In this document: piece after piece, positions 1,488-50,710 of the stretch | How the letters are laid out: every line of letters begins with the position of its first letter | How positions within the stretch are numbered: position 1 is the stretch's first letter | Sequence record: MW735835.1 | DNA: 64,000 nucleotides | Strand: one strand, 5' to 3' | Translations under genes and position numbers: made by a program | The notes under the pieces: generated by a model | The model's database searches: none | What the model saw: the letters and a program-made list of their open reading frames with translations, nothing else | Told to the model about the DNA's origin: nothing

Positions 1488-1964
1488 ATGTCATCCACCC
1501 ATCCTGGCTACATCAGCGCTGCTCGCCTCGAAGACCTGCGCGACCTGTGCCAACCATCGCAGTTCAATACCACCGAAGAAGCCCACAGCGCCCTGCATAA
1601 CGGCATTATCGGTCTGCTCAAGAATACCGACAAACTCTGGGTCGATGCCCGGCGTTTGATCCCCGGTGACATGTTCATGAACGACGACGCCAGCGGTCGC
1701 GTGTTCATCGTCAAGGATCGTTTCTTCCATTACACCCACCATACCCGGCTGTCTCAGCGTATGGTGTTCGGTGAACCCCAAACCCCGCACGGGACCAACG
1801 TCCTGCAAGGCGAGTACCTCGAACTCTCCCTCAAGGACACTGTGCCCGGCGCATCGTTCTACGCATGCGTTCACACTGGTCTGATTTACAGCGCTGTCGC
1901 AGACAAAGACCCCTTCCCGGATTACAAGATCGGGAAGTCCGTTTACCTCATCACTAAGCCCTAA
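1488..1964 (+). CDS. Hypothetical protein
   Basis: AAGGAG RBS before ATG 1488; ORF track frame 1464..1964. Confidence 0.7.
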   Translation: MSSTHPGYISAARLEDLRDLCQPSQFNTTEEAHSALHNGIIGLLKNTDKLWVDARRLIPGDMFMNDDASGRVFIVKDRFFHYTHHTRLSQRMVFGEPQTPHGTNVLQGEYLELSLKDTVPGASFYACVHTGLIYSAVADKDPFPDYKIGKSVYLITKP

Positions 1965-3486: not shown

Positions 3487-3828
3487 ATGAATATCGAATT
3501 TAAGGGCCCTACGGCGCTCATCTTCGACGTTTCAGCCCTTACCGGTACCCTAGATATAGGTGGAATGATTCCGCCTCTTGCATGGCAGTTTGTGATCGAG
3601 CAAGACCTGATCGAAAAAGTCGGATTGACGATGGTGTCCACAACACCTCACTGTCCTTCGTTGGAGAATCAGTACAGCTTGATTCGCAAGTTGCAAGACC
3701 GGTACGAGCAGACGTTCGTTGATCAGCTTGATCAGCACTTGACAGCGCACCTGCGCTTGTTCGGGTTATCAATCGAGATGACATTGGATTACTTGGTCGT
3801 CTTTAAAGAGAACACACTTAGGAGTTAG
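3487..3828 (+). CDS. Hypothetical protein, first of small-gene array
   Basis: GGAGGA RBS; 113 aa. Confidence 0.65.
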   Translation: MNIEFKGPTALIFDVSALTGTLDIGGMIPPLAWQFVIEQDLIEKVGLTMVSTTPHCPSLENQYSLIRKLQDRYEQTFVDQLDQHLTAHLRLFGLSIEMTLDYLVVFKENTLRS

Positions 3829-3830
3829 CC

Positions 3831-4439
3831 GTGCAAAACATCGCAGTCCCCATTTCCGAGCTAGTCTCGTACCTTGATGAGACGCTCAGCCTGTGGCCTC
3901 GTGGCTACAACGTAGAGCCCACTGGCCCGGCGCGGAGTGATGTACTGGTACGAGCTGCTGCTGCGTTCGCCCAAGATTACATCCTGATGTCCATGCGTCA
4001 TTTGCGTCGGAAACCTGACCCGTTCCTGACCTTGCTGGATCATCTGGGTTACCCACTGCGCGCCATGTCGGAAGCTGAAACGGATGAGCTGTGCAATGAG
4101 GCGGATGACTTCTTCCTCAACATGACTCTGATGTTCGACCAATTCGTCGACGGTGTGGTTAAGGCTGTCGGGACCCGCAACGTGGAGTTCCGGCACATCG
4201 CGTTCACCGAAGACCTGATCATCGAGGTGAAAGAAGATGCCGCTGCCGAGCGGTACAAGCGCATGCTGATGAAAGTCAAGCGGTTGACCCCTCCGACCCG
4301 CGTGCAAGAGGTCGATGACCTCGGGCCGTATCAGGAATACATCGATTACGCGTTGGGTGAGGTGTTCAACAACATCCACAACCCGACGATTCATGATGAA
4401 GTCAAGCGCATGTTCACCGAGAGCCTCAACCGTCAGTAA
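3831..4439 (+). CDS. Hypothetical acidic protein (array member)
   Basis: AGGAG RBS + GTG; 202 aa. Confidence 0.75.
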   Translation: MQNIAVPISELVSYLDETLSLWPRGYNVEPTGPARSDVLVRAAAAFAQDYILMSMRHLRRKPDPFLTLLDHLGYPLRAMSEAETDELCNEADDFFLNMTLMFDQFVDGVVKAVGTRNVEFRHIAFTEDLIIEVKEDAAAERYKRMLMKVKRLTPPTRVQEVDDLGPYQEYIDYALGEVFNNIHNPTIHDEVKRMFTESLNRQ

Positions 4440-4450
4440 GGTGTCGTCCC

Positions 4451-4894
4451 ATGGTGAGTTTCCTAGTGTCAACTGGCGAGATGGAGAGCATGATCATGGA
4501 CATGCTTTCCGATCAGTTTGGTGGTTGCTTCACAATGGAGGCGACCAACGTCATCGGCCGCCTGGTCGATACCTATAATCGGACGGAGTCAGCCGAACTG
4601 GTTGATGCCGTGATCGAGTCGATCAGGATGCCCTTGGTTGACTACTCCCCCGTGGATGTCATCGTGGACCACTTCCTGGCTCTCGTACAGAAGCCAGTGG
4701 ATCTTACGGTGTACGTGCCGAACCTGGAATACAGTGCCGCGAACGATACGATCGTGGTACGCCAGTTCAAGCGCCCGGTGCCTAACCCTACAACCCGAAT
4801 AAAGGAAGACTTCAACCATGCCCAACAGCAGGGTGACTTCTTTCCTGAAAGGCTACGGCGCGCTTACGAAGAGCTTGTATCCTCAGGCATATAA
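4451..4894 (+). CDS. Hypothetical acidic protein (array member)
   Basis: TAAGG upstream; 147 aa. Confidence 0.65.
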   Translation: MVSFLVSTGEMESMIMDMLSDQFGGCFTMEATNVIGRLVDTYNRTESAELVDAVIESIRMPLVDYSPVDVIVDHFLALVQKPVDLTVYVPNLEYSAANDTIVVRQFKRPVPNPTTRIKEDFNHAQQQGDFFPERLRRAYEELVSSGI

Positions 4895-43364: not shown

Positions 43365-43871
43365 ATGTCTGATAAACGCAGTGGTATCGAGAAACTGACC
43401 AACCCGGAAGCACTTTTGCAGGGCTATTGGCAATCAGTGGTCCACCAGTACCGGGAAACCGATTACATTATCGTGGACGAGGACATCCGCGATATCGTCG
43501 CCAAGATCAACGAAGTTTCCGGGGTCTTGGTGACCGACTGCTGCGCCTCCCATCCGGAGCGTGAGCGTCATAACCTCTACCTGGCCTTCCTCCCAACCAC
43601 CGAAGGCTTTGATTTCCTCGCCGACCTGTATAACCACTTCGTGGGCCAGGTGTTGAACGAGGCAGTCATTGGTAATCTGGTCTCGCAGATCCAATTCCGT
43701 GTTCGTCATCGACAAGTCGATGTGAAATTCCAGGAGTGGGGCACCATTTGGAGCATCCGTCTCCCGGTGGACGATCAGAACGTGAAAGATCGTGCACTCA
43801 CCTGCCTCAGGAGGGCTGTTGACAATGCCATTGGAGATCTTAGACGAGAACCTGTGGGCGATCCAAGCTGA
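43365..43871 (+). CDS. Hypothetical protein with TDCCASHP motif
   Basis: GGAG RBS; KINEVSGVLVTDCCASHP resembles the LNxxxGxxTxxSCxGH phage domain. Confidence 0.7.
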   Translation: MSDKRSGIEKLTNPEALLQGYWQSVVHQYRETDYIIVDEDIRDIVAKINEVSGVLVTDCCASHPERERHNLYLAFLPTTEGFDFLADLYNHFVGQVLNEAVIGNLVSQIQFRVRHRQVDVKFQEWGTIWSIRLPVDDQNVKDRALTCLRRAVDNAIGDLRREPVGDPS

Positions 43872-44286
43872 CACCCGCGTCATCACTGTCAACATGGTGG
43901 GTGCCATGGGTGCAGGAGTCGCCAGAACGGCCAGGAATACCATCCCTGGGCTGTACAAGCACTACCGCAAGATGATCACCCAGATCGAACCCACCCAGTT
44001 CATCACTTACCAACATGACGGCATCCGTTATTTGCTGATTCCCACGAAGCTGGATTGGCGAGACCCTTCGCCACGTGGGTTGGTGGTGCACAATTTCTGT
44101 AAACTGGTGGTCTTAGCCAACCGCCACCGCTTAGGCACCATCGTACTGCCGCCCATGGGGTGTGGGAACGGCCAGTTGGACTGGGAGAATGACATCCAGT
44201 ACCTCTACAAGTCGTTGTTGCCGTATCAAGAGACCAAGTTCATCGCCGCGTTAGGCGACATGAGGAGCAGGAATGGAAGGTCCTAA
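43825..44286 (+). CDS. Macrodomain ADP-ribosylhydrolase, DarG/OARD1-like
   Basis: VNMVGAMGAGVA, LIPTKLDWRDPS, LPPMGCGNGQLDW; AGGAGG RBS. Confidence 0.85.
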   Translation: MPLEILDENLWAIQADTRVITVNMVGAMGAGVARTARNTIPGLYKHYRKMITQIEPTQFITYQHDGIRYLLIPTKLDWRDPSPRGLVVHNFCKLVVLANRHRLGTIVLPPMGCGNGQLDWENDIQYLYKSLLPYQETKFIAALGDMRSRNGRS

Positions 44287-45166
44287 TTACTTCCGCGATG
44301 CGTTCGGGTATTTCAAGCGAAAGACAGTGATCCCTGGGACCGATGGACTCGCCAATGCGATGCAGTCGGCCATCAAGGCTCACAAGTTCGTGTTGCCGGA
44401 AGGTGGGCGGGTGCTGGATAACGACTTGCGGGCTCTGCCTGACATCGTTCGTTTGCCGTACCCTACGTTGGTGCTCGAATATGCCTGCGAAGAAGACGTC
44501 CTCAGACCAATTGCTCAAGAGGCTGTTGACAAGGGCAGTGATGACGCCGAGATCCAGTTCATGCTCAAGGGCGGTTTCCGTCGAGACAAGCTGATCGTCA
44601 TCGCCATGCAGAAAGATGACAAGGACATCGACGTCTTTATCATCTTCCATTCCCCATTGCAGAACAACTGGGCTAGCCCGCCGTTCGAATGCACCATTCC
44701 GTCGAAAAAAGAAGAAGTGATGAACTTCCTTGATTCGGCTATCATCCCTGTTCGGGTTGAAAGTGACCATGGGATGTCGCAGGAATGGTTCCAGAAGATC
44801 GTCTGGGCCACCATGCAAGGACCTGTGCGTGCTATTTACGAGGTCGTTGAGGCGCTCTCGTTCAGTAACATCACGGAGATGGACATCCCTGCGAAGAAGA
44901 TGACCTTCACCGAAAGCCGGAAGAAGGCCTTGCCCTACGACAGCTACAAAGTGCTCGTGGTGGACAAGACTCAGAAGATCGTTGGTGCAGGGCGAAGCGA
45001 ACAACGAGCACCGGTGCAGCCTGGCGAGCGTCGTCAGAGCCGTGAGCACACCCGTCGAGGTCATGACCGTACCTATAAACGGTCCGGCAAGAAGATCTGG
45101 ATCAATCCCATGGTGATCAACGCCGGAGTGGGCGGAACGATCATCAAAGACTACTCAGTGAAATAG
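44273..45166 (+). CDS. Hypothetical phage protein with C-terminal basic HxRRGHxR motif
   Basis: GAGGAG RBS; REHTRRGHDRTYKRSGKKIWINP. Confidence 0.8.
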   Translation: MEGPNYFRDAFGYFKRKTVIPGTDGLANAMQSAIKAHKFVLPEGGRVLDNDLRALPDIVRLPYPTLVLEYACEEDVLRPIAQEAVDKGSDDAEIQFMLKGGFRRDKLIVIAMQKDDKDIDVFIIFHSPLQNNWASPPFECTIPSKKEEVMNFLDSAIIPVRVESDHGMSQEWFQKIVWATMQGPVRAIYEVVEALSFSNITEMDIPAKKMTFTESRKKALPYDSYKVLVVDKTQKIVGAGRSEQRAPVQPGERRQSREHTRRGHDRTYKRSGKKIWINPMVINAGVGGTIIKDYSVK

Positions 45167-45177
45167 GAGCGTCACCT

Positions 45178-45651
45178 GTGAAAGAGAAGAAACAAGTCCG
45201 TCTGGTCAACATCAGCAAAGCCCGCGTACAGAAGATCGATCCGAAGCTGCCATTGGTGTCCATCACCGACCGTTACAGCAACGGCGTCTCCATTCCGTAC
45301 AAGGATCAGCGCCCCTTGTTGCAACTGGAGTTCTTCCCGCGCGACCATGCGCCGGAGATCGCAGTCGAGCACTGCATGACCATCGAGCGCGCAGATCAGC
45401 TGATCAAGTTCGTCGAAGAGCAGCGTGAGGCCGGTGCTGAGGTGATCTACATCCACTGCACCGAAGGTCGTGTGCGCTCCTATTCGGTCTGTGCTGCACT
45501 GGAAAGCCTGCCGGGCTTCTACCATGACCACTCCGATGCCTGCATCAAAACGGGTATCCTGGACCGCTACACCTACAACCTCCTGGGTGATCGTTGCGAC
45601 GCTTACGACGAAGCCCGCTCGGCTGGCGCCGAAGAGGAAGCAGCCTCGTAA
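45178..45651 (+). CDS. Protein-tyrosine/dual-specificity phosphatase-like enzyme
   Basis: P-loop IHCTEGRVRS (HCxxGxxRS); TAGGAG RBS + GTG. Confidence 0.8.
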   Translation: MKEKKQVRLVNISKARVQKIDPKLPLVSITDRYSNGVSIPYKDQRPLLQLEFFPRDHAPEIAVEHCMTIERADQLIKFVEEQREAGAEVIYIHCTEGRVRSYSVCAALESLPGFYHDHSDACIKTGILDRYTYNLLGDRCDAYDEARSAGAEEEAAS

Positions 45652-45661
45652 AAAAGTACCA

Positions 45662-45895
45662 CGAGGGGATAGTGTATGCGAAATACGTTGGCACGCCGTG
45701 ATGCCAGCGCCCCTTTCGGATCGCCAGTCACGCGTGATCACATCCTCGGCCTCTCACGGCGGCGCGAGGACTGGTCACCGGCTGGCGATCCCCATACAGG
45801 GGACCTGTAGAGGGCTCTCTAACCCGTTCTCGCCGCCCGTACCCGTCCGTGGCACAATGGCGTGACTACGAGGTCCCCGCCTATCCTCAACCTCG
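45662..45895. ncRNA. Candidate large structured ncRNA of unknown class
   Basis: Intergenic; closing stem 45662-72/45881-95, 10-bp stem 45718-27/45782-91, 8-bp stem 45799-806/45871-78, crossing pairing 45728-33/45860-65. Confidence 0.6.
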
Positions 45896-45909
45896 GTAAG
45901 GATCTACCG

Positions 45910-46701
45910 ATGAAACAAGTCTACCTCGGCGTCAAAATCATCGTGGGCCAGCCCATGACTCGTGGTGCTTACAACGAGTACCGCGGATGGCAAACCCCGG
46001 AGCGTGAAAACGCTGAAGACGAAGGCTATCTGGTGGAATACCCGGACAGCGCGCCGAACCACCCGGACCATGCCGGGTACATCAGCTGGTCACCCAAGTC
46101 GGTCTTCGATAACAGCCACATCGCCCTTGGCGACGTGTCGAACTTCCCGCCCTTCGCCGTCCGTCTGATCGGCGAGCGCAACCAGCTGGCCAGCAACCTG
46201 GGCAAGCTGAAGACCTTCCTGGAAGGTGACGTTACCCACCTCAGTGAGCGTAACCTCGATCTGCTGAACCGTCAGGTACAGGCACAAGAAGTCCTGCTGG
46301 ACATCCTGAACCAGCGCCTGGATTCGGTTGACCTGGGCGTGAGCGTGTCCACTTCGGTTCGCGTCGAGCTGGACCTGGCCAACAACAACGCCAAAGACCT
46401 GATGGGTCTGGCAATTGCTGCTGGTGCTGAAGGTCAAGGCCCCACCGACGTCATCGTGGCACTCGAAGATGCCAAGATCGTCGATGCCGAGGGCAACGAG
46501 ATCGCCGACTCCAGCGTCGAGATCGAGAACCTGGTGCGTGGTTTCTCCGTGAGCGGCAACATCGGCGAGAACCTCTACGGTGTTGCAGTCTGCCGTGAGC
46601 GTTGCGTAGCCAACGTGCACAGCTCCTTCGTTGAAGAAGGCACCAAGCTGTCCCTGCTGGTCAAGATCGGCAGCCACAACCGCGCGCCAGCTTTCGCGTA
46701 A
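45910..46701 (+). CDS. Three-domain phage protein (YxGxK/EGYLVxY/SWSP domain + crAss001_48-like helix pair + unknown C-terminal domain)
   Basis: TAAGGA RBS; YLGVKII..PMTRGAYNEYRGW..DEGYLVEY..YISWSPK; ERNQL..KLKTFL..LLNRQ..LDILNQR. Confidence 0.75.
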   Translation: MKQVYLGVKIIVGQPMTRGAYNEYRGWQTPERENAEDEGYLVEYPDSAPNHPDHAGYISWSPKSVFDNSHIALGDVSNFPPFAVRLIGERNQLASNLGKLKTFLEGDVTHLSERNLDLLNRQVQAQEVLLDILNQRLDSVDLGVSVSTSVRVELDLANNNAKDLMGLAIAAGAEGQGPTDVIVALEDAKIVDAEGNEIADSSVEIENLVRGFSVSGNIGENLYGVAVCRERCVANVHSSFVEEGTKLSLLVKIGSHNRAPAFA

Positions 46702-46761
46702 ATCGTTACGGCCTCCGTAGATAGATATGTGAAACCACTATTCATCTTACGGAGGCTTTCG

Positions 46762-46938
46762 ATGTATCGCGTCCTGTCACTCGAAAAGATTCGCCAGCAA
46801 CAAACCCCCGAGGAACTGGAGAACAATCGCCAGAAGACCTTGGAAGCATGCGCTCGTTTCAAAGAGGCTCAAGAATCCTTGGAGAAGCTCTGTGCAGAAC
46901 GAGGCATCGAAGTGCCCGTGATGATGTGCGCTGCCTGA
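46762..46938 (+). CDS. Small helical protein
   Basis: GGAGG RBS before ATG 46762. Confidence 0.6.
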   Translation: MYRVLSLEKIRQQQTPEELENNRQKTLEACARFKEAQESLEKLCAERGIEVPVMMCAA

Positions 46939-47340
46939 TGTCGGAGGCTCCCTAGACGTGGATGCGTTGCACGGCTTGCGTCCATTCATGTCAGGGGTGG
47001 TTCCCGGGGTACGGGGAGCCTCCACATTCTCAAGCCTGTACTCTGCCTATGGTATGTCGACCGAAGATTTCTTCCCTCGATGTGCTATGGCCCGAGACGA
47101 ACTGCGATTCAGGGGCGGTCCTGGCTTGAGAAAGGCTCCAGCTTCAACTGGAGTCGAGTCCCAACGAATTACGACAGCTCAAGGCGCTGCTGCGCTTGGA
47201 TTGGGAGATCCCGGTCGGCTGTCACCTGTTCGGAAAAGGCCCGGGTTAGCGGGCATCGGGCCAGCGGCAGCCTTTTGGCAGCGCGCGATAATGGCCGGCA
47301 GCCTACGTGGTAGCCATCCGCCGGCGCCCGGGCCTTTTCC
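46938..47340. ncRNA. Tandem structured RNA modules upstream of tRNAs
   Basis: Closing stems 46943-52/47014-23 (10 bp), 47027-36/47123-32 (10 bp), 47232-45/47327-40 (14 bp perfect) plus internal hairpins; no credible CDS. Confidence 0.6.
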
Positions 47341-47350
47341 ACCTAGTTGT

Positions 47351-47426
47351 TCCGCGATAGCTCAGTTGGTAGAGCAGCAGACTGTTAATCTGTTGGTCCC
47401 TGGTTCGAGTCCAGGTCGCGGAGCCA
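47351..47426 (+). tRNA. tRNA-Asn (GTT)
   Basis: TCCGCGA/TCGCGGA acceptor, AGCTCAGTTGGTAGAGC D-arm, CT-GTT-AA loop, GTTCGAGT T-loop, encoded CCA. Confidence 0.97.
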
Positions 47427-47435
47427 GCTTCACCC

Positions 47436-47512
47436 GGCTCCATAGTTCAGTTGGTTAGAATGCTAGCCTGTCACGCTAGAGGTCAGGGGTTCGAGTCCCC
47501 TTGGAGTCGCCA
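47436..47512 (+). tRNA. tRNA-Asp (GTC)
   Basis: GGCTCCA/TGGAGTC acceptor, CTAGC-CT-GTC-AC-GCTAG anticodon arm, GGGGTTCGAGTCCCC T-arm, encoded CCA. Confidence 0.97.
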
Positions 47513-47529
47513 TTTTCACGGATACGATC

Positions 47530-47763
47530 ATGCACGATAGAATCGTTGAACTCGCCAACGCCCATGACGTCACCACCGCTGCTTTCGAAGCGCTCCTGAG
47601 TCAGGAGTTCTTGGCAAGAGTGAGTGTGTTCCATCGTCAGGCGAAGCATGTCACCGAAGTCATCAATCGTTTGCTGGTCGTGGTCCAAGGTGAGGAAACT
47701 CACTACATTGAACTCATGATGATCTTGATTGCTCCTGATCCGAAGTGGGTTCTCGCTCAATGA
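47530..47763 (+). CDS. Small hypothetical protein inside tRNA cluster
   Basis: 77-aa helical ORF; its TGA stop is the first triplet of the tRNA-like element. Confidence 0.55.
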   Translation: MHDRIVELANAHDVTTAAFEALLSQEFLARVSVFHRQAKHVTEVINRLLVVVQGEETHYIELMMILIAPDPKWVLAQ

Positions 47764-47841
47764 GGACGTGGGGCCAGCCGGTACGGCAGTCGCTCTTGAT
47801 GCTTCTAGGAGTGGGTTCAATTCCCACCCGTCCTCAACCCA
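47761..47841 (+). ncRNA. tRNA-like element / degenerate tRNA (anticodon unresolved, TTG or CTT)
   Basis: 8-bp acceptor TGAGGACG/CGTCCTCA, D-arm GCC-AGCCGGTAC-GGC, T-arm GTGGG-TTCAATT-CCCAC; anticodon stem mismatched. Confidence 0.6.
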
Positions 47842-48186
47842 TTCAAAGTTTCTGTTGTGCGGCGGCCGCTGTGCAACGGGATGCCGAGAGATAACTCTAG
47901 AAGGTCCAGAATCCGCCGTGGGAGGCAGACTTCCGACCTCTGGGGGCGATTGCAGTCGTCGTTCTCTTGGTTACAGTGCTAGGGACCATCCCGCCCGATA
48001 CGGTGCAAGGCTGCGACGAATTCCACAAACACGACTCCCTAGAGTGCACGCTAGAGGAGCAGCCGTACCTGAGGTCCATCCAGGTGGCGGTGTTGTAGTG
48101 TCACCCTGATGGACTGCTGTACGTTCTGGACTGGTTCCAGCCGCGGCACGTGACTACGGTAGAATAGCAACCGGTTCCGCCTCTGG

Positions 48187-48227
48187 CTGCCCGCTTGACC
48201 CTCGTTGGCGAGCGGGCAGTTATGCCG
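48187..48227 (+). terminator. Stem-loop closing the RNA cluster, followed by TTATGCCG
   Basis: CTGCCCGCT/AGCGGGCAG 9-bp stem. Confidence 0.65.
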
Positions 48228-48270
48228 TTTCAACTACTTGGAACTGACTATAACAAGGACATCGGCCAAC

Positions 48271-48648
48271 ATGCACTACTTCCTGTTCTACCCAGCTCTC
48301 AACGCCTCATTCAACGACAGCACGGAACTGCTCGCTAAGTTCATGTGCCTGGGGGAGAATATCGTCGTGGCGATGGAGAAGGGTATTGAGAAGACTAAGC
48401 GAGTGGAGGAGGACGAACTCGAAGCACCACTGCTGCACCTTGTGACTGGCTTCAATGTCCGGCGCATTGAGCAGAAGTTCAACGCCATTGTAGAGAAAGT
48501 GATTGCTCGTTTCGGACAAGGATTGGAGCCCTCTCAGCCGAGCGAGAAAGGTAAACTGTCGATGATCGCCCTCCTGCTTGTACAGGACCGCTGGGACATC
48601 ATCGAGCAAGTAATAGACACTACGCCTTTGGCAATGCTGAGGCCGTAA
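48271..48648 (+). CDS. Hypothetical protein
   Basis: AAGGA upstream of ATG 48271 in ORF 48205..48648. Confidence 0.65.
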   Translation: MHYFLFYPALNASFNDSTELLAKFMCLGENIVVAMEKGIEKTKRVEEDELEAPLLHLVTGFNVRRIEQKFNAIVEKVIARFGQGLEPSQPSEKGKLSMIALLLVQDRWDIIEQVIDTTPLAMLRP

Positions 48649-48705
48649 CCATTTCATGAGGGGCGGCTGTCCGCCCTTTATGCCGTCACCCAAGGAGACT
48701 CATCT

Positions 48706-49143
48706 ATGCTGTCCAATCGTGAACTGTCCAAAGCCGTGCGTTGTGAAGTGCTCGGTAAAGTCAACCGCCGCATCAACTCGCTGTGTCGCATCCACAAACC
48801 GCTGCTGTCCAAGTTGGGACGTTGCTATTACGTCGTCTCGCTGAGTAACATCAAGCGGATCAAGATCCGCGTCATGTCGGCAGAGGCGCCGCTCGACCCG
48901 ACCAAACGCTGCCTGCTGGTGAACAGAGACCTCTACTCCCAGAATGCCTACTACGGTTGGGTCAAATACGACGACGGCAAGTGCCGGTTCGAGCGTCAGA
49001 AGAAAGTCAAAGAAGGGGTGACCTACGCCGATGGTCAGATCCTCTTCGAGATGACTTTGACGGGCATGGACGATCACTTCAGTCAAGAAGACGTCCGCCA
49101 GGCGTTCAAATACTACCGGGCGAAGAAGGAGTCGAAGAAATGA
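48706..49143 (+). CDS. Hypothetical basic protein
   Basis: AAGGAG RBS; 145 aa. Confidence 0.75.
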   Translation: MLSNRELSKAVRCEVLGKVNRRINSLCRIHKPLLSKLGRCYYVVSLSNIKRIKIRVMSAEAPLDPTKRCLLVNRDLYSQNAYYGWVKYDDGKCRFERQKKVKEGVTYADGQILFEMTLTGMDDHFSQEDVRQAFKYYRAKKESKK

Positions 49144-49616
49144 AGAGCCCTTTCTTTTACCTAGGCAAGCTCACTGGGTATATCCATGGCTGGTTCACGG
49201 GCTGGATGGAGGGTCGGCGTGTTGCTGCCCTGTGGCGTCAATACGGGGCACTGGAGGCCATCCCCACTCGTCTCCTGCGTAACACCGGTCCATCGGCACC
49301 GATGATGGTGCGGCGCCAACAGGTGAAGATCGCCACGTTCCATCTGCTCAACGCCCTGGACATGACCAATGGCCCGCAGATCCCCAACACAATCGCGATG
49401 GTGGAAGCCTGGCTGAGCTTCAACTCTCAAGGCGAAGACATCATCACCATGGAGAACATCTCACGTTCAAACGGGATCGTCCACTCGCTGATTGACCTCG
49501 CTGTCCGTAAAGACGGTCTGGACAAGACCCAGTTACAAGAAGCCTTCAAGGCCATGAACAAGGTGTGGGTCTGGGAGCAGTACCGTACCAACAGATTCTT
49601 GTCCGTGGGCGATTGA
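49140..49616 (+). CDS. Hypothetical protein
   Basis: AAGGAG upstream; ATGA coupling at 49140. Confidence 0.7.
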   Translation: MKSPFFYLGKLTGYIHGWFTGWMEGRRVAALWRQYGALEAIPTRLLRNTGPSAPMMVRRQQVKIATFHLLNALDMTNGPQIPNTIAMVEAWLSFNSQGEDIITMENISRSNGIVHSLIDLAVRKDGLDKTQLQEAFKAMNKVWVWEQYRTNRFLSVGD

Positions 49617-49678
49617 CATAAACGGGAGGGGTGCACCCCTCCCTTTCTTTTTGTTTTGATTCGAATTATTTTCGACAA

Positions 49679-49693
49679 TACATGATAGCGGTG
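49679..49693 (+). promoter_or_regulatory. Phage promoter motif variant
   Basis: TACATGAT agcgg TG after a terminator. Confidence 0.65.
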
Positions 49694-49720
49694 AATATCC
49701 CCACCAATGTCTAAGGAGAC

Positions 49721-49978
49721 ATGATGAACCGTATCGAAAACGATGTAATGGGTACTCACGTCCTGCTCAACCTGGTCAAAGAGATCATGGACTGTGCCAT
49801 CAACATGAAGGACGAAACCACAGCCGAACGTATCCAGATGGTCCGCATCTGGTTCAACCGCGCCAAGCCGTCCGTTCAGCAGGATGTTGAAATGTTCCTG
49901 CGCCACATCCTGGCTGGGGAAGAAGAACACCAGACTCGTCTGGTTCGTTCTGCTATCGACATCATCATCACGAAATAA
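49721..49978 (+). CDS. Small hypothetical protein
   Basis: AAGGAG RBS; 85 aa. Confidence 0.75.
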   Translation: MMNRIENDVMGTHVLLNLVKEIMDCAINMKDETTAERIQMVRIWFNRAKPSVQQDVEMFLRHILAGEEEHQTRLVRSAIDIIITK

Positions 49979-49987
49979 GGGATCGCC

Positions 49988-50710
49988 ATGCACAACCTGA
50001 ATGAGTTCACTGAAGACCAGTACGGCAACTTCATCATCGAGCACGATGGTGTAGAGGTCAACTACGGTCGTCTGCGCCTGATCGGGACCGAGTCGGGCAT
50101 GATGTTTGTGACCGATCTTCGTAACTACGGCGACATGGTCGAGATCTTCATGGAGGATTCGCTCTCCATGGAGAAATTCGATGGGCGGGCTAACTTCCAC
50201 CTTACCATCGAGATCGGTGAGCGAGGGGAAAGCAACTTTGTACGTTTGTGGCCGGTGCTCAATGAGGATGTCGATCGCCTCTGTCGAGTACTGACCGTGG
50301 AAACAGGTAACATCGTCGAGGTGTCGCACGAAGGCCATGTCTTGGCGGTTTATGACCGCCATGAGCTGAAGGAACAGTCTCACAACCTGGACTACTTCGA
50401 CAGCGAAGTCGCTCCCGATGCCGTCGAGGCCACTTCCTGGCCTCGACTGGAAATGGACTTCGACCTCGCGGCGAAGATCCTCAGTGAGTCCATCCGCGAC
50501 GAACTGCGTGATCATGCATTCGGCGATAAGGAAATCTACTGGCGAGATCAACACGGCCACCAAGTTGCCACGGGTTACTACGGTTCCTCTGGCGTCGAAG
50601 TGGGGATGTGCGGGTTCGACATCAACTTCTCTGAAGAAGAAGCTCGTCAGCTGGTTGGGCTGGGGACTCTGGGTGAAGTCCAGCGAAACGACTCCCAGGG
50701 GGACGAGTAA
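49988..50710 (+). CDS. Hypothetical acidic protein
   Basis: TAAGGGA RBS; 240 aa. Confidence 0.75.
   Translation: MHNLNEFTEDQYGNFIIEHDGVEVNYGRLRLIGTESGMMFVTDLRNYGDMVEIFMEDSLSMEKFDGRANFHLTIEIGERGESNFVRLWPVLNEDVDRLCRVLTVETGNIVEVSHEGHVLAVYDRHELKEQSHNLDYFDSEVAPDAVEATSWPRLEMDFDLAAKILSESIRDELRDHAFGDKEIYWRDQHGHQVATGYYGSSGVEVGMCGFDINFSEEEARQLVGLGTLGEVQRNDSQGDE

Follow-up and report, generated by a model that had tools for sequence, protein, structure and literature searches.

Structured RNA modules upstream of the tRNA genes of Pseudomonas phage pPa_SNUABM_DT01, with their assortment among uncultured relatives

Structured RNAs encoded beside phage transfer RNA (tRNA) genes are a long-standing puzzle, exemplified by RNA C and RNA D of phage T4 and by the GOLLD and ROOL RNAs. 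The two T4 RNAs (‘species 1 and 2’) are small, stable, non-tRNA products of the T4 tRNA region whose role is unknown (PMC3014915; PMC9697503), while GOLLD and ROOL are ‘often near tRNA islands’ in phages and prophages, the 3′ part of GOLLD being conserved and its 5′ part variable (bioRxiv 10.1101/2024.12.08.627333). Here, we analysed a stretch of 64,000 nucleotides (the window) that is part of the genome of Pseudomonas phage pPa_SNUABM_DT01 (MW735835.1, 265.5 kb; 100% identity), hereafter DT01, a jumbo phage that published comparisons rank with the closest, if still distant, relatives of a nucleus-forming phiKZ-like phage (PMC12390700). An unannotated gap of 410 bases, 5′ of two tRNA genes, contains four structured modules (m1–m4, with m3 divided into 3a and 3b). 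With an even degree of confidence, we interpret positions 46943–47343 as four separate structured non-coding RNA genes that represent at least four new families, are carried in a plastic RNA island, and give rise to trans-acting products processed together with the tRNAs. The families are new, the general kind (structured RNAs of phage tRNA islands) is known, and the cassette-like behaviour of the modules is unusual.

T4 RNA C and RNA D are the closest analogy to what the DT01 modules probably represent; the latter are conserved structured non-coding units on the tRNA strand directly upstream of tRNA genes. The differences lie in the host and phage lineage and in the four adjacent long-stem modules of DT01. 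The DT01 modules also resemble GOLLD and ROOL in being phage-encoded next to a tRNA island; however, each of those is one RNA of 580–800 nt with long-range pseudoknots, whereas the DT01 units are 80–125 nt long, individually closed and independently assorting, lack a covariance-model match, and do not always occur together. The locus would add at least four new, small, and well-delimited RNA families in a cultured phage of P. aeruginosa, and because DT01 is grown on this host, the families could be studied at the bench if the phage can be engineered.

On the + strand, the 421-nt module stretch folded at −206.5 kcal/mol (z = −4.84; 0 of 100 shuffled sequences were as good), compared with −169.4 kcal/mol (z = −2.18) on the − strand. 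Folded separately, modules 1–4 gave z-scores of −3.75, −4.74, −3.56, and −4.32, respectively. All four are multi-helix junctions, each with its own closing stem of 8–17 bp, and in a module-versus-module comparison within the window (nhmmer) each matched only itself, with no sequence in common. Every stem string listed in a first-pass annotation of the window was found in place: GGAGGCTCCC (46943) and GGGAGCCTCC (47014) with the inner GTGGATGC (46958) and GCGTCCAT (46978) in module 1; TTCTCAAGCC (47027) and GGCTTGAGAA (47123) in module 2; TCCCAA (47159) and TTGGGA (47201), and GACAGC (47173) and GCTGTC (47218), in module 3; and the arms of a perfect 14-bp stem (47232 and 47327) and GCCGGC (47294 and 47320) in module 4. 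In relatives, compensatory changes also back the GACAGC/GCTGTC pairing, all four closing stems, and the 8-bp hairpin in module 3. That annotation is therefore upheld in its stems, coordinates, and folding, and needs revision for the inner register of module 1, the proposed pseudoknot of module 3, and the GCCGGC pairing of module 4.

Database searches, which had been proposed as a check on the modules, identified no known family. A cmscan of 46600–48400 against Rfam at E ≤ 10 matched nothing inside 46940–47350, the tRNA model included, and ARAGORN called only the two tRNAs at 47351–47426 and 47436–47512. RNase P RNA, transfer-messenger RNA (tmRNA), signal recognition particle RNA, 6S RNA, riboswitches, and ribozymes, as far as Rfam holds models for them, were likewise without a match in the block. 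Retron or guide RNAs were rejected, since the annotation and family searches show no reverse transcriptase or nuclease gene beside it. With respect to coding, a chance open frame crosses the block in DT01 and runs into the tRNA-Asn gene, and the corresponding region of the uncultured relative L051 has at least four stops in each of the six frames. The claim that non-tRNA structured RNAs lie in the tRNA array is thus borne out by strand-specific folding, compensatory changes in every module, and the lack of a conserved reading frame. The Y-RNA-like, toxin-neutralising, and decoy functions offered along with it found no such backing, although a decoy role is possible. No Rfam match of the Y-RNA type (Y RNA, YrlA) was obtained at E ≤ 10, the phage genome not having been searched for a Ro/Rsr protein. 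Unlike type III antitoxin RNAs (ToxI-like), the modules are not tandem repeats of one unit by nhmmer, and none of the flanking proteins searched (NCBIfam, PHROGs) matched a toxin family.

Relatives had to be sought among uncultured phages. Searches of 50,697 cultured phage records with the region and the neighbouring small proteins (megablast, blastn, and tblastn) returned only DT01 itself and tRNA matches; a decoration-like neighbour protein retrieved only unrelated phages through a common N-terminal domain, and a 77-aa neighbour protein retrieved none. A protein search with the downstream gene identified L040, an ENA contig 96–98% identical to DT01. The DNA polymerase encoded 5 kb from the block, used as a query, identified eleven IMG/VR contigs of 50–277 kb with polymerases 68–87% identical, as well as further metagenome contigs, including L065 (93% identity). 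In the uncultured relatives that carry the same modules, the DNA polymerase is 81–93% identical to that of DT01; L051, L063, and L075 represent the same phage. Covariance models of m1 and m2 found no further members across about 600 kb of related loci, and a scan of IMG/VR for the conserved m1 motif matched the L051 contig only.

The search for covariation in these related phages, also proposed beforehand, revealed paired changes in all four modules. In m1 (46943–47024, + strand), a stem of 11 bp closes a three-way junction, which also has a long hairpin. The m1 homologues in L051 and L065 differ in stem sequence, and RNAalifold predicted 27 pairs across the three lineages, 11 of which were changed on both sides. 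The motif AGGGGUGGUUCCCG (46993–47006) is invariant in all three lineages with m1 (DT01, L051, and L065), and the apical stretch GUUGCACGGCUUGCG is common to DT01 and L065. For the inner helix, the minimum-energy fold takes the register GACGUGGAUG/CAUUCAUGUC instead of the GTGGATGC/GCGTCCAT pairing first suggested, and by our reading this register corresponds to stems in the L065 and L051 folds. m2 (47027–47132, + strand) combines a 10-bp closing stem with a conserved inner helix (CUGCC/GGCGG) and a long arm that terminates in a GAAG/CUUC hairpin, and its covariance model matches L051 at E = 6e-9. Between DT01 and L051, two-sided changes affect three pairs of the closing stem (UCUCAAG../..CUUGAGA versus UCUUGAG../..CUCAAGA), two of an inner helix (UCGA/UCGA versus CUGA/UCAG), and two of the inner hairpin (GAAG/CUUC versus GAGU/ACUC). 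The mean column identity of m1 and m2 to DT01 is about 71–75%, with the folds kept.

Module 3 consists of two parts. Module 3a (47134–47172, + strand) begins with an 8-bp hairpin (47134–47155) with the loop CUUCAA, followed by the conserved single-stranded GAGUCCCAACGAAUUA. The hairpin reads GGCUCCAG/CUGGAGUC in DT01 and GGUGUUGG/CCAGCAUC in L051, so that four of the eight pairs are changed on both sides and one more on one side; the loop (CUUCAA versus CUUCAC) and tail are kept. Module 3b (m3b; 47173–47226, + strand) has a 7-bp closing stem, GACAGCU/GGCUGUC, with an inner U·G pair and a 3′ ACC; the stem reads GGUAGCU/GGCUACC in L051 (two two-sided changes). Its interior holds a variable hairpin and a sequence-conserved one, GAUUGGG-AGAU-CCCGGUC (47199–47216), which is 100% paired in six sequences. 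The crossing TCCCAA/TTGGGA pairing proposed for module 3 overlaps the 5′ arm of this hairpin. The hairpin stands alone, with no TCCCAA partner, in four contigs (L054, L074, L073, and L076), and both sides of UCCCAA/UUGGGA are invariant in the two lineages having both. Comparison of these sequences thus leaves the pseudoknot disfavoured.

m4 (47232–47343, + strand) is the most widespread of the modules. A 14–15-bp closing stem is followed by a second short helix, two arms, and a 3′ ACC, and each arm (47267–47282 and 47297–47315) is a hairpin of the form GCAGC(C)-loop-G(G)NAGC that contains an A·A mismatch; across homologues, two to four such GGCAGC-type hairpins occur, with the mismatch conserved. 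Eight homologues folded independently gave one architecture (long closing stem, second helix, and two arms), to which the GCCGGC/GCCGGC pairing of the first-pass annotation does not belong. The m4 of L065 is 74% identical to that of DT01. A covariance model built from the DT01 sequence alone matched homologues at E-values from 1e-26 to 2.5e-4; L052 and L072 were matched weakly (E = 0.37 and 0.47, respectively), and L052 is still among the eight sharing the fold. In the model-guided alignment of eight sequences, pairing holds in 94.6% of cells and both sides have changed in 24 of 39 pairs, a result that none of 500 shuffles reached, and sliding the partners by 1–3 columns reduced pairing to 33–44%. 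An earlier run of MAFFT and RNAalifold on the eight homologues misaligned the stems (15 pairs, −3.7 kcal/mol) and was superseded by this alignment. As an observation on the island of L072 (17690–18640, − strand), the weak m4-like module there scores 19.4 bits and has the closing stem GGAAGGGCCGGG/CCCGGCCCUUCC; a tRNA-like element missed by ARAGORN lies in the same island.

Across the modules, compensatory substitutions keep the helices while loop and junction motifs stay fixed. G·U pairs in the alignments are conserved or interchange with G-C and A-U pairs, which supports an RNA encoded on the + strand, since on the − strand these pairs would be A·C mismatches.

The arrangement of the modules varies among the relatives. 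The RNA island appears to be kept between two conserved protein genes by this clade of Pseudomonas jumbo phages, which is reportedly related to nucleus-forming phiKZ-like phages, and also to hold tRNAs and odd tRNA-like genes. The flanking genes keep their order, and the non-coding island between them spans 0.4–2 kb (longer in L051), with a tRNA content that varies by phage (Tyr, Asp, Gln, Asn, His, Ser, or Thr). L051 has m1, m2, m3, and m4 followed by tRNA-Asn, in the order of DT01. In L065, m1 is joined directly to m4 in an island containing no tRNA. L054 has m4 and then m3b, and L074 has m3b and then m4, directly after a promoter-like motif; L044, L046, L047, and L052 carry m4 alone of these four families, before tRNA-Tyr. 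L045 has lost m4 and is otherwise near-identical to L046, which has it. The deletion occurred between copies of a GGC(Y)TT microhomology, taking 12 nt outside the m4 stem and leaving the last 5 nt of the stem. L048 and L050 have almost no island, and the polymerase relatives L081 and L082 have neither an RNA island nor a comparable non-coding gap. Judging by these contigs, gain, loss, and reordering affect each module separately from the others and from the tRNAs, and the natural presence/absence variants show the modules to be separable units.

The comparison with L040 adds evidence of exchange. DT01 and L040 show no differences over 46846–47351, compared with 1.6–5% in ordinary flanking genes and spacers; the small upstream gene PA10_00178 has three substitutions and the modules none. 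This zero-substitution tract may reflect selection, recent exchange, or both. The tRNA-Asn of L040 (881–956) differs from that of the window (47351–47426) at 24 of 76 positions and is the L075 allele with one mismatch; the island evidently exchanges cassettes by recombination. The tRNA-Asp genes differ at seven positions, mostly in the anticodon arm.

Further modules of this type were observed in the relatives between tRNA-Gln and tRNA-Asn, in L045 and L047 (reverse-complement 4386–4615 and 3504–3735, respectively), and also in L044 (4181–4292). Both families, designated ‘A’ and ‘B’, are absent from DT01: family ‘A’ has a 20-bp closing stem, and family ‘B’ has the closing stem GYUCACUG/CAGUGARC, with compensatory change, and GGCAGC motifs. 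The phenomenon is thus wider than the four families described here. In addition, tRNA genes of about 110 nt (Rfam 48–52 bits, missed by ARAGORN) were observed on the − strand in L044 (17002–17110), L045 (16868–16982), and L047 (17751–17862). The L045 copy has an extra ~45 nt in the anticodon loop, and these genes may be intron-containing or disrupted.

Under our preferred interpretation, the modules and tRNAs would be transcribed as one precursor, as suggested by their common strand, the spacers of 1–10 nt, and the lack of a terminator between them. Processing from the tRNA transcript, as the first-pass annotation had it, is plausible. Host tRNA-maturation enzymes would cut the modules out, with RNase P acting at the base of each closing stem, a proposal suggested by the ACC that follows the closing stems of m3b and m4. 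Within the Pseudomonas-phage clade, this ACC is always found after m3b and usually after m4. Closing stems followed by ACC resemble RNase P's hairpin substrates, among them the precursor of 4.5S RNA. The long closing stems would then shield the products from exonucleases, and the products would work in trans, as stable RNAs with a binding partner. By its appearance, the iterated GGCAGC hairpins of m4 with their A·A mismatch could form a multivalent protein-binding platform, while the invariant loop and junction motifs of m1–m3 suggest specific partners. As for the benefit to the phage, the likeliest candidates seem to be counter-defence or the sequestering of a host factor that binds RNA.

Several points weigh against this interpretation. 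Transcription, processing sites, and stability are all inferred. The ACC after closing stems is not universal, being replaced by GUC in L051, GUU in L054, and AUC in L044. In DT01, m1, m2, and m3a lie only 1–3 nt apart, and their order is kept in L051, an arrangement that a single RNA of several domains would also fit. For m4, the covariation was counted on an alignment fitted to the model, a procedure that favours structure; the independent single-sequence folds are free of this weakness. The covariation in m2 rests on two lineages and that in m1 on three. The tract identical to L040 could be a recent recombination tract, the adjacent tRNA-Asn having clearly been exchanged. Finally, the m4-less L045 and the clade members with no island indicate that the modules are accessory.

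The alternative that survives best, which we consider possible but unlikely, is that the four modules are domains of one GOLLD/ROOL-like RNA of ~400 nt, with m4 as a conserved 3′ domain and variable 5′ domains, which might assemble into a higher-order RNA particle beside the tRNAs. The modules do abut (spacers of 1–8 nt), DT01 and L051 share their order, and m4 is widespread and the 5′ modules variable, as in the conserved 3′ and variable 5′ regions of GOLLD. However, no GOLLD or ROOL match was obtained by cmscan at E ≤ 10, nor at the gathering score in the window or seven relatives, with an Rfam library that should include both models; each module has its own closing stem, and conserved pairs linking one module to another were not observed. 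The inverted order in L054, the m1–m4 junction of L065, and the four relatives with m4 alone also speak against it, as the occurrence of modules in subsets and different orders argues against a single obligatory multi-domain RNA. Of the two possibilities raised by the first-pass annotation, an array of separate small RNAs therefore fits better than the domains of one GOLLD-like RNA.

A more far-reaching version of the preferred interpretation, which we consider doubtful, is that the modules are the first members of a cassette system of phage small RNAs that travel with tRNAs and serve as multivalent decoys or sponges, neutralising host defences or capturing a host RNA-binding protein. For example, m3b would be a mimic of the tRNA acceptor arm and m4 a platform of repeated protein-binding hairpins, and the targets would be host defences that attack tRNAs or sense RNA. 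As in tRNA mimics (YrlA, the tRNA-like domain of tmRNA, and minihelices), the layout of m3b resembles a minihelix: its 7-bp closing stem and a 7-bp hairpin adjoin without a break, ACC stands at the 3′ end, and m3b sits among tRNAs; in the unrelated contig L076, it directly follows a tRNA-like element lacking an anticodon arm. It differs from them in having no T-loop sequence and no Rfam tRNA, tmRNA, or Y-RNA match. If this version were true, phage tRNA islands might more generally be counter-defence RNA islands.

Somewhat more doubtful still is a cis-acting role within the tRNA precursor or neighbouring mRNAs, as a processing or stability element, a protective leader, or the 3′ untranslated region of the small upstream gene, in which case the modules would lack any separate function. 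They do lie directly 5′ of the first tRNA in DT01, L051, L044, L047, and L052, and structured non-coding stretches flank tRNA clusters in other large phages (z = −3.6 in FLC1-1B and −3.9 in RVTF4). Against this, L065 keeps m1 and m4 intact with compensatory changes though its island has no tRNA, which counts against a simple tRNA leader. The motifs in loops and junctions do not vary between lineages whose stems have changed, a sign of specific recognition and not of stability in general. A tblastn search for the upstream gene (c178) also gave no match in any relative searched, m4 carriers included.

It is very improbable that the inverted repeats work as DNA, be it as miniature mobile elements, as signals for recombination or replication, or as palindromes bound by proteins. 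The repeats are perfect over 10–14 bp, m4 is present in L046 and gone from L045, and the island is a recombination hot spot in which tRNA-Asn was swapped in L040. However, one strand folds much better, G·U pairs are kept or swapped with G-C and A-U, and compensatory changes reach the inner helices, beyond the termini. The L045 deletion is offset from the m4 stem ends, which indicates slippage rather than terminal-repeat excision, and, unlike miniature inverted-repeat or REP-like elements, the modules have no common sequence and the four closing-stem arm pairs (10–14 nt) are each single-copy in the window. Equally remote is the idea that the modules are decayed or highly derived, functionless tRNA genes: their size and spacing are like those of tRNA genes, aberrant tRNA-like genes occur in the same islands (47764–47840, and the ~110-nt tRNAs with inserts in relatives), and the 3′ arm of the m3b hairpin runs into the 3′ strand of the 7-bp closing stem and then ACC, the topology of an acceptor/T-arm minihelix, but neither ARAGORN nor the Rfam tRNA model (even at E ≤ 10) found anything in 46940–47350, there is no T-loop or cloverleaf, and the folds, far from eroding, are maintained by compensatory change.

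The core of m3b recurs outside the clade. A scan of the JGI metagenome collection for this 23-nt core, GGATYGGGRGAW(N)CYCGGTCGGCT, identified two unrelated lineages of uncultured contigs in addition to the relatives. In the first, AT-rich lineage (L073, also L077), the core lies inside a cluster of seven tRNAs; in the second, GC-rich lineage (L076, also L078 and L079), it is directly 3′ of the tRNA-like element. Both have the same m3b hairpin, with a flanking closing stem of different sequence. Among 185,579 bacterial and archaeal species genomes (one each), a single match was found, inside a protein-coding gene of a Burkholderiaceae metagenome-assembled genome, which we take as chance. As an isolated match can arise by chance, the case for the two metagenomic lineages rests on their context and flanking stems. 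Taken with the absence of a real site from those species genomes, the recurrence of the core at a tRNA cluster and a tRNA-like element suggests an RNA motif that is phage-specific and has a conserved partner. The L076 element and its m3b hairpin occupy 1590–1700 (+ strand), where acceptor, D-like, and T arms are directly followed by the conserved m3b hairpin.

Every gene within 44273–50710 is on the + strand, the same as the modules. Upstream of them, PA10_00178 (46762–46938, +; 58 aa), a small coding sequence (CDS) present in both the GenBank annotation and the open reading frame list, ends with its stop codon 4 nt before m1. The last module ends 10 nt 5′ of tRNA-Asn (GUU; 47351–47426, +), the first gene 3′ of the modules, which is followed by tRNA-Asp (GUC; 47436–47512, +); both were called by ARAGORN and Rfam (72.3 and 69.5 bits, respectively). 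Neither an intrinsic terminator nor a sigma-70-type promoter was predicted inside the module block.

Two further elements were observed 3′ of these tRNAs. The first is a tRNA-like element (47764–47840, +) that overlaps the 3′ end of the CDS PA10_00181 and has a 7-bp acceptor-type stem, a T arm (GUGGG-UUCAAUU-CCCAC), and an irregular anticodon region. Neither ARAGORN nor the Rfam tRNA model calls it, and the sole match is between its T arm and the 3′ end of the tmRNA model (E = 0.0014). The element shows no differences from L040 and a fold z-score of only −0.8. The second is a long non-coding stretch (47841–48271, +; whole-stretch fold z = −1.85), in which L065 is 95% identical over 48029–48227 and most relatives about 75%, and a long GC-rich hairpin lies near 48185–48222. 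It contains CCCTAGAGTGCA, which resembles CCCTATAGTGTGCA, found 5′ of the module arrays in L051 and L074, and motifs of this type may be phage promoters; the candidate promoter motif (TATGTGAA/CCCTAGAGTGCA) had too few occurrences within the window for evaluation.

About 2.7 kb upstream of the modules, PA10_00174 (43825–44286, +; 153 aa; PHROG ‘phosphatase’) contains a macro domain that resembles the DarG antitoxin's N-terminal domain (NCBIfam E = 1.6e-21, below the full-length cut-off). A counter-defence function against DarT is possible, and, as weak evidence, the gene would fit an accessory or counter-defence neighbourhood.

Non-homologous stretches in a similar setting were also observed in other large phages. 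A non-coding stretch beside the tRNA cluster of Ralstonia phage FLC1-1B (L043, 1921–2401) and one in Pseudomonas phage RVTF4 (L042, 1994–2500), which runs into an annotated small CDS, are those whose fold z-scores were given above, and structured RNA beside tRNA islands may be common in large phages.

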